A DNA stretch of 64,000 bases from Blastocladiella emersonii ATCC 22665 (lineage: Eukaryota > Fungi > Blastocladiomycota), in the NCBI GenBank assembly GCA_025594325.1, contig JANHCV010000001.1, positions 558,001 to 622,000 of the forward strand. The letters run 5' to 3'. Under the pieces are notes generated by a model, which saw only the letters and a list, made by a program, of their open reading frames with translations, did not search any database and was not told the origin of the DNA. Below are positions 7,793 through 57,966 of this stretch, one piece after another. The translations under genes and the position numbers were made by a program. The first letter of the stretch is position 1. Every line of letters starts with the position of its first letter.

Positions 7793-8879
7793 AGCGCGTC
7801 GCCCGTGTGCGTCACGTCATCAAGTAAACACCGGGAGCTTGGGCCATCCGCCAGAAATCTGCGGTCGGCAATCGAGGCTTCGTTCTGCTGTCCCGTCGTG
7901 TGGTTTCTGCTGTGGAGCAGCGGGTAATATATTTGAGTTGGCTGCTTCCTTGGTTTACTTGATGAATCCATCGATGAAATCTTTAACATAAACGAGACCA
8001 AGCTCATCACACGTCTTTGAGTCCTTGACGACAGGGGCTGCTAGTTCAGGACTCGCGTCGCTCATCTGCACGTGTGGGGCAAGCCTCACAGCCTCGTTTC
8101 GTCCTCCCCCGTCGCCGAACGCCCACCACCGCTTCTCCCCGTTGAACCCCCAGGGATCCCTCTAGAGATGCTAGCTCATGCAATAACTTACTGCAACGAT
8201 TATGAATCACGTCCTTGTTATGATTGACCCCGTCGTGGGCATCCGAAATTCATTGAAGCGTGCAGCGCTCCTCGTCGGACACACATACCCTTTGCAGCAC
8301 TTTGGTCAGATTCCAACATGATCAATGCGTGTTTGCACCGATTGGCCAAATCCTGGGACACGGCCTTGCCCGGCACGCGCTGACTCGTGGCGCAACGCGC
8401 GCGGCGCGGCGCATCAAAAGTCATTCTCCACCACTGCTTAAAGTGTACTGTCATGCCGAGAAACAAGCCACCTGCAATGGAATCAATGCCGTTGGCACCA
8501 TCAACAATCGCTTGAATCCCTCGAACGTGTGACTTGGCTTTCGAGCAATCTCCACTGACGCTCGAGGTCGATTTGGTTGAGAACAAAAATGCGTCAGCGC
8601 TGCTTTGCAGTCATACCACGCTTGCCGCTCCTGCGGTCAGACCTCTTTAAGCATCACCCTGACGATAACAACAGGTGCGATCCTCTGGCGTGTGAGTTGC
8701 AACAGTGACGCTAACATTGACGAGGTGAGCGTAGGAAGCCAAGCTGCTGATCAACGCCCTTCCATTTGCTCAGATAATCTCGCATACTTGATGCAACGAG
8801 CATATATTCTCATCACGATTATCGCGTATCTCGCGGCTGCTTTTGGCCGCAATGCCGCGACCCGCACAAGATTTCAAAG

Positions 8880-9060
8880 TCTCAACTCACGATAGCTTCA
8901 CTCGGATAGTTCTCGCTCCTATGGCACTGCTTCTCGACATGGCCCGGACGGGCGCCGTGAAAAGCTACGCGTCGCCCGTGCGAGTCATGTCCTCGAGCCC
9001 ATGCCACCACGAGCGAAATCCGTTTTGAGGGAGGCTCTCGCGGCCGAACATCGTTTCTGT
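8880..9060 (+). pseudogene. Coding remnant of a small dispersed family (REKLRVARASHVLE..AKSVL)
   Basis: Same peptide with synonymous differences at about 62040-62300 (minus strand); a third copy is split between 7793-7860 and 61708-61760. Confidence 0.5.
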
Positions 9061-9164
9061 TCTCTGTGTCCTCGGTCATACACTCAACCTTGTACCTCAT
9101 CGATCCCGGTCCCGCTCCTCGCATTCCGCCCGAGCTCAAAAATACCCGTCTCACTCATCTATTC

Positions 9165-12100
9165 TCACGACGTCGGCGTGCTGTCCGCGCGCGACAGCTT
9201 CGACTTGGGCGATCGCGAGCGCACGCCGCCTTCCTCGGCTTCCACGTCGGACAGCGCCGACGGTGTTCGCACGCCACCTCCGCCTGAGTTCCCACTGTTG
9301 GCGACCATGCTGCTCCCGCTGAGCCGCTGCAGGAGCCCGCCCTCGCTGTTCGTCGACGCGGATCCGAGGAGCATGTCGCGTGTGCGCTGCGCGAGCTCGG
9401 TGGCCGACGGCAAGAACCCGGAACTCGTCTTGCCCGCCTCGTTGCCGCTGGGCCGGAACACGCCGGCGGCCGAGTTGGTCGACCCGCGTCGCGGTTTCGC
9501 GTTGTGCGAGGACGCGGGCGAGGGCGAGAGCGAGAGGTTGGTGAGGCTGCCGCTGACGCGCGCGCGGATACTGGACGACAGGTTCGAGATGCTGCCCATG
9601 GACCCTGCGATGGGTTCGAGCATGCGGCCACCACCATGGTGGTTCTCGTTGGCTGCTGCCGCGGCGGCCTCAGCAGCTTCGGCGGCCGCCGCGGCCGCGG
9701 CTTCGGCCTTGCGCTTGCGCCGTCGCTCGCGCTCCTCCTCGCGCTTCTGCTTCTCGGCCGCCTCCTGCAGGCGCTTCTGGTTGCTCTGGACGCGGCGGTC
9801 GATCTCGGCCTGGAACACGGGCCCGATCTCCGGGTACTTGCGCAGGATGTCGTCAAAGTCGTCCTTTTTCAGGACGCACTACGGGTGCGAGGTGCACGGG
9901 TCAGCGAGCGTGCGGCGTGAGTGATGGAGGAGGAGGATTGGATGGCGTACCAGTTGCGTTTCAGACGACGTCCGCGCGGTGGCCGTGCGCAGGACGTTGG
10001 AGAAGAGCGCAAACTCGCCGAAAAACGACCCGGGCATGAGCGTGACGAGGATGCGCGACTCGTCGGGCGTCATGATCTCGACGCTGCCCTTGCGGATAAA
10101 GTACATTTCGGCACCCGCGTCGCCGGCCTTGCAGATCTGAGGAAGCGAACGGTGTGAGTGCTGGATACGATGCGGCGCGGGGTGGGAAAGCGTACGTAGA
10201 AGCCCTTGGTGATGTTGATGGTGCTTATCCTGAATACACGAGCGACGATGGTCAGCACGCCGTGGCCGGTTTTGAGGCTCAAGTCGCGTACCGTTGGCAG
10301 AGCGCGACAATGAACACCTCGGTCGCGTGGTCCTTGAAGATCGGGACGTTGGCGATCAGGCTACATGATGGCGCACGGGATCAGTATTTTGATCACACCC
10401 GCTAGTTATGCAGCCGGACGCGTACTTGTAGTACAGATGGATGTTGACGTCGACGCGGATCGGCTTGGGCAGTTCCGAGAACAGGCGGTCCGTGTCCATG
10501 CCCTTCTTGTGGATCCATTCAAACTCCTACACGTTCCAAGCCCCGTAATGAGAATCCGACCATCGGAATGTGTTGCGCGTGCGCGTACCTCCTGATCCAG
10601 GATCTTGAGCTGCAGCGCCGGCGGTAACTGGTTCTCGACCATGAACTCGCGCAGGAACGCGCGCTTGAAGTTGCGGACCTTGGCTACACCGCGCCGCGCC
10701 CGTTGCCATCAGCCCACCAATCACGCCGCGGACCCACACCTGAGAGCACACGTACCAGCTTTATCGAGCCCCGCCTGCGAGTCGAGCGACCGCACGATCG
10801 ACGCGAGGTTTCCGAAGATGGAACCGTACAGGACCGCGGCCGCGAGCATCTCGGCGGCCTGGAACAGGATCTCGGGCATGGTCTTGATCTCGCGCGGCAT
10901 GAAGTACAGGGCTTTTTGCGCGCCGTAGCTACACACGGTCGAGTGGTCAGCGATGCTTTCGGCGCGGTGGGTGACGGCGAGGTGAGTGGGGCGTACAAGT
11001 TGCGGCAGTACCGCTCAAGAAACGACGTCGGGTTCCCGTCCTCGTCGAACAGAACGGACTCGGTCACGAGCCACTTTTTCTTGGACACGATGTTGATCTA
11101 CACCCGCAAGTTGTGAGTAACCATCATATCCCTTGTGACCGGAAGAACCGTACGCTCAGGATCCAGTACGCGCACGCGTCAATGTGCGAGAGGAAGACCG
11201 AGAACACGAGCGTCTTGATGAGCCGCGAGATGGGCTCGGCGAGCTGCGGGAGGCGGAGGTTGACGACCCAGATGAGCGTGCGGCCGGTGCGCAACAGGCG
11301 GAGCATGCGGAGGTAGGCGTAGGCGACGGTCGCCGCGGGTACATCCCTAAACACGAACCGATATGTGAGCCCATCGAACTCGCGCAAAGAGCCTTGTCAC
11401 GTACACTTGGTCGTAATCGAACCGGACCCCCTGCAGCACGAGCTCCGGCCTCGGCGTCTTGGAGAAGACGCCGCCGGTGTACGCGTAGATAGGGTCCGAG
11501 CACTGGTAGCTGGCGGTGCTGGTGGCGACCATGGCGTGGAACAGGACGAACCAGTCGAGCGGGATCACGGCGAGGATCTCGAGCTTGGACATGGCGTGGC
11601 CGAGGTACACGCGTCGTTTCTGGCTGCGCTCGGCGATCAGGAGACCGAACGAGTCGAACCGCGGCCGCGTCAGCTCGACGGCGACCGACGCGATCAGGAT
11701 CACGTCCAGCAGGCACCACACGAGACGGTACTCGAACGTGTAGTCGCACGCGAACGCGAGCAGCGTCGGGATGCTGATCAGATTGTCTACACTCGTCGCG
11801 AGTCAGCCAACGCACATCGTGAAGAGAGAGCGACGGAAACGTACACATGTCGATCATCCGGATCACCATATCGTAGTACCCCCAGAACCGCGCCCGCGGG
11901 TTACACAGGATCTCGAGCTGCATGCGCGTGAGGTTAGCGCGGCACAGGCGGTACCGGTGGACGATCCGCTCGACGAGCGCCATCTCAGGCGCGTCGAGCG
12001 CATCGCTCATCGAGTTGGTATCCCCGTCCGCGCCGTGCTCGCCCGACGTCGTACTGCCCGTCGTCCCCGCTGCTGCGCCCGACCCCGCGGACGGCGGCGG

Positions 12101-56788: not shown

Positions 56789-57371
56789 TGTAGTTTAAGA
56801 GAAGAAGAGCTGAGCATATGACAGTCAAAAGTGGAATAGTTGTGTGCACGGGACCGGGCGTATAGGCGAAAAAAACCTATGTAAATCGAATTGTTCAAGA
56901 CGCCACACAATGATGCTTCATATGGTTCAAGTCTAGTTGCATAGAGTTCGAGAATAGATTGTATTGGAGAACTTTGAGATAATCGAGGAGAAGCTAATTC
57001 GAGCGCAACAAAAACGCGACGCGTCGCAGCGTGTGGTCACGTTACACCAGAAACCCCAGCTTGAGCGCAAATTTAGTTTGACAGAAACTCAGCCTACTGC
57101 TGAAAACGAGTAAAGCCCGTCCCCCTCACTCCGCTAGTGAGGGGCAATCTGGCTGGTCAAGACGCAGATGAATATGGCTTGAGTTGGTTACGCAGCCATA
57201 GCTGGTGCGTGGGCTAAGCGAGGAGAGCCTCCAGCTGCAGTTTAGGGAGTCACCGAGTTCGAGTCCCGTTTCAGGAGGTTGAATCGTGCGGTAGTGACAG
57301 ATTCTAGAGATCAATCCCCTGCAGCTGTTTCGAGGCGTGCCAAGCGAAGCAACAATTCCGGGCTGGCAAAC

Positions 57372-57413
57372 TTTTCGTTTTCGTTTTCGTTTTCGTTTTC
57401 GTTTTCGTTTTCG
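57372..57413. repeat. Microsatellite (TTTTCG)x7
   Basis: Seven perfect hexamer units. Confidence 0.95.
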
Positions 57414-57966
57414 TTTTAGCGATCGCCTTGGCGAAGTTGGCAAAATAGTTGCAGCTGAGGTCCTGCTCTCGGTCCCAGGCCCTTGTGTGATACGCTGGAT
57501 GGCAGCGGGCCCAAAACGATGGCTGACATGATCCGAAAGGAGGCAAACAACAAGGGAAACAGTCAATAACTGTGGTGGCGGAAGTACGTGACCTTTTGTA
57601 TTATGAGGTTTTGGATGGAAACTGCCACTGCAAACCAGGAGTGCGGGTTACACAACCACACACAATTTGCTGTGATGGCGATAGCCTTACGCTAGTAGCA
57701 ATCAAAAGAGCAGGGAGTTCACCTGCACACAGTGAAAAGGCACCTCAGTTAGCGGTCGCCACTATCCCCTAACCGTGGGTTAGTGTTGGTTTAGGAGAGT
57801 TAGTGGCCGTAGTTGATGGTTAGCGATGGTTTGAAAGTTGACCGGGTTTAGTCGAGATTTAGTGGTAGGGTTAGCGTGATCAAACTACTAACTACCGTTG
57901 TTTAGCTTAGTAACCTTGGTTCGTGGGGCATGGTTAGGCAATGAACCCCTCTCAGTTAGTAGCAAG

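Follow-up and report, generated by a model that had tools for sequence, protein, structure and literature searches.

Two copies of a transposon, here called element C, lie in opposite orientation on contig JANHCV010000001.1 of Blastocladiella emersonii ATCC 22665 and bracket a block of 50 kb. The locus raises the question of whether this block has been inverted and, if so, by what kind of event. An initial annotation of this DNA had proposed that ectopic recombination between the two copies flipped the block as a unit. We analysed a window of 64,000 nt, i.e. positions 558001-622000 of the 5.14-Mb contig in the same orientation (assembly GCA_025594325.1), and all positions below refer to this window. 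We conclude that an inversion of some kind very probably took place, and that ectopic recombination between the inverted copies is the best explanation for it, a plausible one that we favour somewhat.

A repeat search of the window returned one long inverted pair (4204-7792 versus 57967-61555, extended by 4043-4209 versus 61541-61707), which corresponds to copy 1 (C1) and copy 2 (C2) of element C (Table 1). Both copies have the left end CATCGGAAATCGCGG; the right end is ...GGATTTGCGATG (GCGATG) in C1 and ...GGATTTCCAATG (CCAATG) in C2. The palindrome GCAAATTTGC is found next to the CATCG.AAATC ends; one occurrence is near the left end and three are near the right. Because it contains no open reading frame (ORF) longer than 177 aa, and because 12 of its ORFs gave no domain match in Pfam, element C is a non-autonomous DNA transposon. 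Beyond the termini, it shows no similarity to the nearby elements A and B or to the rest of the window. No differences separate C1 from C2 in the first 88 bp or in a core of 3380 bp, which together make up 3468 of ~3750 bp.

Read in element orientation, the flanks are ..GGTT / AGCGCG.. for C1 and ..AACAG / CTTGCT.. for C2. As the initial annotation had stated, neither copy has a matching target duplication (TT/AG at C1, AG/CT at C2) and element B has a clean duplication of 2 bp (GT/GT); the ends of element C and its 2-bp duplication agree with the family rule seen at element B. We joined the reverse complement of the sequence that abuts the right end of C1 to the sequence that abuts the left end of C2, i.e. 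rc(7793...)+(61708...), and searched the join against the window. A match to 8997-8934 extended across the junction (64 nt, 79.7% identity, E 2e-10), and so did a second match to 62153-62197 (E 1.7e-5). The 13-mer CGCGTCGCCCGTG is present exactly at 7795 (+), 8968 (+) and 62167 (-), while exact matches to the 13-mer GGCGCCGTGAAAA lie at 8951 (+) and 61712 (-), and a further site, 62184 (-), has a single mismatch. A spacing of 4 nt separates the two 13-mers in the intact motifs, and the join has this spacing as well, provided that one AG/CT dinucleotide is counted once.

We then considered all four pairings of the flanks with 0, 2 or 3 nt removed. Only the pairing of the C2 left flank with the C1 right flank crosses the junction (one of the four), and it is ungapped only if exactly 2 nt are removed. 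In fixed register, the halves match 8934-8997 at 26 of 34 positions (p 3e-8) and 25 of 30 positions (p 2e-9; binomial, match probability 0.3). Thus, re-pairing this site, hereafter site 2, restores a CT duplication and a 64-nt motif in exact register and, with one CT, an ungapped alignment to two intact motifs (8934-8997 and 62151-62211), as had been claimed. A formal alignment of the join to these paralogues had been named beforehand as the test by which the proposal could be refuted, and the E values and fixed-register identities above show that the join withstood it. The two halves of the split motif are 54 kb apart on opposite strands, one of them inside the block at the right end of C1 and the other outside the block at the left end of C2.

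In total, an inversion of 7793-57966 that occurred later than the insertion is the only simple reading of the flanks, and as a reading of sequence it is well supported: an inner flank is joined to an outer flank, and therefore the DNA between the copies would have been inverted. This argument from the split motif places the inversion after the insertion without the need of an outgroup. Movement of the whole 57 kb as a composite transposon, by its outer or its inner ends, was rejected because such movement would pair outer with outer or inner with inner flanks, whereas the split site joins inner to outer.

The motif itself, of ~64-100 nt, lies at 8905-9010 and 62140-62245, in addition to the split copy at 61708-61741 / 7793-7824. 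With the inversion undone, the three copies have one orientation and lie within ~2.6 kb of reconstructed spacer between a channel gene and CSF1. Two reading frames are open throughout the motif. It matched no Rfam family, no tRNA and no called gene, and the surrounding ORFs had no Pfam match. The translation of the join given by the initial annotation, REKLRVARASHV, is correct; its treatment of the motif as coding found no backing in gene calls or Pfam matches. An ankyrin-like relic as the identity of the split motif is unsupported.

Table 1. Coordinates of element C, its flanks, the motif copies and associated features in the 64,000-nt window
Feature	Position	Strand	Remarks
Element C copy 1 (C1)	4043-7792	+	3750 bp; short inverted ends CATCG.AAATC; subterminal palindromes GCAAATTTGC; without protein domain
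Element C copy 2 (C2)	57967-61707	-	3741 bp; orientation opposite to C1
Right half of split motif	7793-7824	+	abuts C1 right end; AG, then CGCGTCGCCCGTG...
Left half of split motif	61708-61741	-	abuts C2 left end; minus strand ...GGCGCCGTGAAAAACAG
Intact paralogous motif P1	8934-8997	+	~170 bp past stop of cNMP-binding channel gene
Intact paralogous motif P2	62151-62211	-	
Outer-left flank	3812-4042	+	between element B and C1; ends ..GGTT
Inner-right flank	56789-57966	-	starts CTTGCT read outward from C2 right end; partner of outer-left flank if inversion undone
Identical start of element C	C1 4043-4130	+	first 88 bp; zero differences versus C2
Diverged patch	C1 4131-4406 versus C2 61353-61619	+	~40 differences including a 9-bp indel
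Identical core	C1 4407-7786 (3380 bp); C2 partner 57973-61352	+	zero differences
Last 6 bp of element C	C1 versus C2		2 differences
Inverted block (well-supported reading)	7793-57966		cNMP-binding channel gene, 578-aa gene, RRN3, nrdJ, coiled-coil gene, SRF-TF/MADS gene, DEAH (PRP43-like) helicase
CSF1 3' end (Csf1_C match)	62981-63976	-	directly outside right breakpoint
Element B	1329-3811		ends CATCGGGAAAT; GT on both sides

Ectopic recombination would account for this arrangement as follows. A non-autonomous cut-and-paste transposon with PlavakaB-like ends and a 2-bp target duplication would have come to lie at two places on contig 1. One of the copies would have occupied a transposon-rich island. 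The other, oriented the opposite way, would have interrupted one of the three tandem motifs of ~64 nt in the 2.6-kb spacer that separates the channel gene from CSF1. Homologous recombination between the inverted copies would then have flipped the 50 kb between them, so that each copy acquired one flank from each original site and the motif halves came to lie on opposite strands at a distance of 54 kb. An exchange of target duplications is the classic mark of transposon-mediated inversion (PMC2775673). The case resembles the Galileo inversions 2j, 2q7 and 2z3 of Drosophila buzzatii, whose two intergenic breakpoints each bear a copy of a single cut-and-paste family, the copies being oppositely oriented and their target duplications exchanged (PMC2775673). 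It differs from them in that only one of the two exchanged sites reconstitutes in B. emersonii, in that the cores of element C are identical and not demonstrably chimeric, and in that the host is a blastoclad fungus and the element a PlavakaB-like non-autonomous one that makes a 2-bp duplication (PMC2775673).

Several observations weigh against ectopic recombination or leave the orientation itself less secure. The reciprocal site, site 1 (outer-left plus inner-right flank), shows no matching duplication when re-paired (TT versus CT, or GTT versus CTT if 3 bp are taken), and a search of its join in the window found no paralogue, tandem repeat or spanning ORF, with only a 9-mer in common. C1 and C2 are not visibly chimeric, and a core of 100% identity is not produced by recombination alone; such a core also leaves no differences between the two copies from which chimerism could be recognised. 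Moreover, the orientation of the block is that of a single assembled strain. It is a conjecture that two transitions within 5 bp at the right junction of C2 separate the present sequence from a CCGATG end and a TT/TT duplication, both of which their reversal would restore. Thus, of the initial proposal, one insertion site split 54 kb apart and an inverted block are well supported; the attribution to ectopic recombination is weakened by site 1 and by the lack of chimeric copies.

The identity of the cores bears directly on the mechanism. According to Delprat et al. 2009 (PMC2775673), ectopic recombination yields exchanged duplications and chimeric copies, while hybrid-element insertion from sister copies yields the same flanks with identical copies. 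By this criterion, the identical cores fit one-step hybrid-element transposition at least as well as recombination (PMC2775673). Each explanation must be supplemented: recombination by a parent-daughter relation of the copies or by gene conversion between the arms, either of which could have given the identical 3380 bp, and aberrant transposition by a later conversion patch of 275 bp together with two terminal changes.

A serious rival, which we nevertheless consider fairly unlikely, is such an aberrant transposition in one step, through insertion of a hybrid element or from sister chromatids. A single copy in the island would have been replicated, and the left end of one of the resulting sisters would have been inserted, together with the right end of its counterpart, into the motif 50 kb off, so that the second copy and the inversion were created in one event. 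Examples of alternative transposition are the hybrid element insertion known from P elements and, in maize, the sister-chromatid and reversed-ends transposition of Ac/Ds. The locus is like these systems in that two inverted copies, identical or nearly so, flank the inversion and in that a new target duplication is split between one left and one right end; it is unlike them in that the diverged patch of element C needs a later event and in that no source of transposase was identified. We know of no report or demonstration of hybrid-element or sister-chromatid transposition for the CACTA/Plavaka group. In favour of a one-step event, it gives the same flank pattern and predicts identical copies (PMC2775673), as found over 88 + 3380 bp; C1 and C2 share ~100 sites that differ from the high-depth variants of the family; the motif halves are attached to one left end and one right end, as normal insertion requires; and the family is multicopy and so was mobile. 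Against it, the ~40 differences in the 275-bp patch and the two in the last 6 bp need later conversion or mutation, the original site should retain a matching duplication and instead reads TT versus CT, and a transposase source was not identified by Pfam in 12 ORFs of element C.

It is also conceivable, and in our judgement improbable, that the cells contain the un-inverted order, or both orders of which one was reported; a mixture could stem from flip-flop at the identical arms or from heterozygosity for the inversion, the other haplotig having been purged. The assembly was made with the La Jolla Assembler from 605,547 PacBio HiFi reads (mean 10.5 kb, 6.37 Gb) of a 34.3-Mb genome, its haplotigs were removed by purge_dups (247 contigs reduced to 21), and it was then polished by Pilon with 65-nt Illumina reads (PMC9730499). 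The orientation is taken from this assembly, not from individual spanning reads, and a perfect inverted repeat of 3380 bp is undetectable in k-mer contigs, both of which leave room for a flipped or mixed block, as do the purging and the short-read polishing. Conversely, the HiFi coverage of the assembly is ~186x, and reads of this length cover 3.75 kb many times over; one 5.1-Mb contig runs through both copies, where a balanced mixture would be apt to cause a break; and with the un-inverted order, site 1 would still lack a matching duplication. A misjoin across the 3.75-kb repeat is thus unlikely because the HiFi reads exceed the repeat in length and one 5.1-Mb contig spans both copies, and we infer that the assembled orientation is that of the cells.

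In reversed-ends transposition, the facing ends of two adjacent direct copies in the island would have been cut and inserted into the motif, with loss of the spacer between them and inversion of the segment up to the target. Transposition of this type has reportedly been documented for maize Ac. Among the explanations considered, only this one has outer-left and inner-right flanks that were never contiguous, so that TT versus CT needs no extra mutation, and elements A and B next door have ends that face each other across ~170 bp. It nonetheless requires a tandem pair that is not observed and a spacer that was lost, the mismatch of 2 bp is weak evidence, and the identical cores are still unexplained; we therefore regard it as quite improbable. 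Finally, we dismiss as highly improbable that the block was never inverted and that element C inserted independently into two motif copies at the same position, the missing halves having later been deleted or overwritten by other insertions. Several motif copies are indeed present locally, but this course of events would require two hits at the same site and two complementary losses whose limits coincide exactly with the element termini. In addition, the flanks of other members of the family do not point to a preference for the motif, the retained halves fit an exact 2-nt register, and no remnants of the missing halves are present beside the outer-left or the inner-right flank.

Evidence from reads came from Logan k-mer contigs of four runs from the source sample. 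These contigs can be used for copy number and junctions; they cannot phase flanks across the identical repeat of 3380 bp, so the flank pairing of the two copies is invisible to them. In runs X1-X3, unique flank depth was 36.5, 133 and 9.5, and the depth of element C was roughly 10-30x that of the flank; therefore, the family is multicopy, with about 10-30 copies. Its other members are known from variant calls in the read contigs. Because their shared core is distinct from the high-depth family contigs, which differ from it at ~100 listed positions, C1 and C2 are, as far as these variants tell, mutually closest relatives with a minority version of the core. In three libraries, single-copy contigs cross both junctions of C1 without mismatch (3785-4070 on the left; starting at 7757 or 7763 on the right), and these contigs are unbranched at 7793; therefore, the sample has no empty-site allele. 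The loose ends of read contigs that represent flanks of other family copies are not motif-like, and a target preference for the motif therefore does not account for the pattern.

Three features within element C were also recorded. At 6105-6852, a GC-rich stretch inside the element, depth falls from 10-30x to about 0-1.5x that of the flank; depth holes prove nothing, and this stretch may be private to C1 and C2, e.g. a captured fragment, rather than family-wide. The 275-bp stretch of ~85% identity (4131-4406 versus 61353-61619) is enclosed by the identical 88-bp terminus and the 3380-bp core; it resembles a patch converted from another member of the family, as the recombination scheme would have it, or a subfamily-specific subterminal region. 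Both copies are one base off the ideal right terminus CCGATG (7787-7794 and 57965-57972), GCGATG in C1 and CCAATG in C2, and both may thus lack a perfect end and be immobile.

The relationship of element C to known families was judged from its ends. PlavakaB elements of the CMCT clade in fungi have the termini CATCA..TGATG and target duplications of 2-3 bp (PMC12730594). Element C is similar in its termini CATC...GATG (AATG in one copy) and its 2-bp duplication; it differs in the fifth base (CATCGG..(C/G)CGATG versus the published CATCA..TGATG; PMC12730594) and in having no transposase or TET/JBP gene inside. No Plavaka-type DDE transposase was found in 12 ORFs of element C by Pfam, a search that did not extend to autonomous partners elsewhere in the genome. 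Judged from its ends, element C appears to be PlavakaB-like, and the resemblance is real; its placement in the superfamily is putative. In the neighbouring pair of elements, the end of element A (1158) and the start of element B (1329) have CATCGGGAAAT termini that face each other across ~170 bp (1095-1392), with AGATCT palindrome arrays beside both facing ends. This layout is a reversed-ends arrangement of a kind that can drive alternative transposition.

The genes that the initial annotation had named were found: RRN3, nrdJ, an SRF-TF/MADS gene and a DEAH helicase are in the block, and the C-terminus of CSF1 is just outside it. Its description as a block of core genes holds for these genes and less so for the whole, as 14 of the 50 kb, i.e. 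the last ~14 kb (44-58 kb), are transposon-rich. Undoing the inversion would join this transposon-rich part to the transposon cluster at 1-4042 and place the motif copies in the 2.6-kb spacer on which the 3' ends of CSF1 and of the cNMP-binding channel gene, whose stop is at 9165, converge. At 20339-22606, adjoining RRN3, lies an intron-less gene for a B12-dependent class II ribonucleotide reductase (RNR_Alpha plus RNR-II insertion domain).

Five loci with homologues of the cNMP-binding channel in B. britannica and Sorochytrium have unrelated neighbours, and none of CSF1, RRN3 and nrdJ was found near the channel homologue at these five loci. Without shared neighbours, neither order can therefore be called ancestral from these relatives. 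At two of the B. britannica loci (L004 410-6056 and L006 17-3493), a guanylate-cyclase gene lies directly upstream of the channel homologue; this pairing is not present at the B. emersonii locus in the window.

The inversion separates the 3' end of the cNMP-binding channel gene from CSF1 and sets housekeeping genes (RRN3, nrdJ and the PRP43-like helicase) beside a transposon cluster; because no gene is broken, a phenotypic effect is not expected. The identical arms of 3.4 kb might still be flipping the 50-kb block in living cultures. A transposon-bracketed inversion with exchanged duplications is a textbook phenomenon, of which the B. emersonii case is a clean new example. Its modest extra interest stems from the element family, and from the question whether recombination or a one-step aberrant transposition was at work. 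That the inversion and the second copy arose from one aberrant transposition, in which a linked target received the ends of sister or of neighbouring copies, is doubtful; if true, the one-step event would be the first footprint of alternative transposition by an element of the Plavaka/CACTA group in an early-diverging fungus. In practical terms, the locus can serve as a marker when strains are compared, and as a case on which recombination and aberrant transposition can be tested against each other. B. emersonii serves as a model among zoosporic fungi, its transposons and structural variation have scarcely been described, and the locus offers a base-pair-level record of a multicopy non-autonomous transposon reshaping its gene order.

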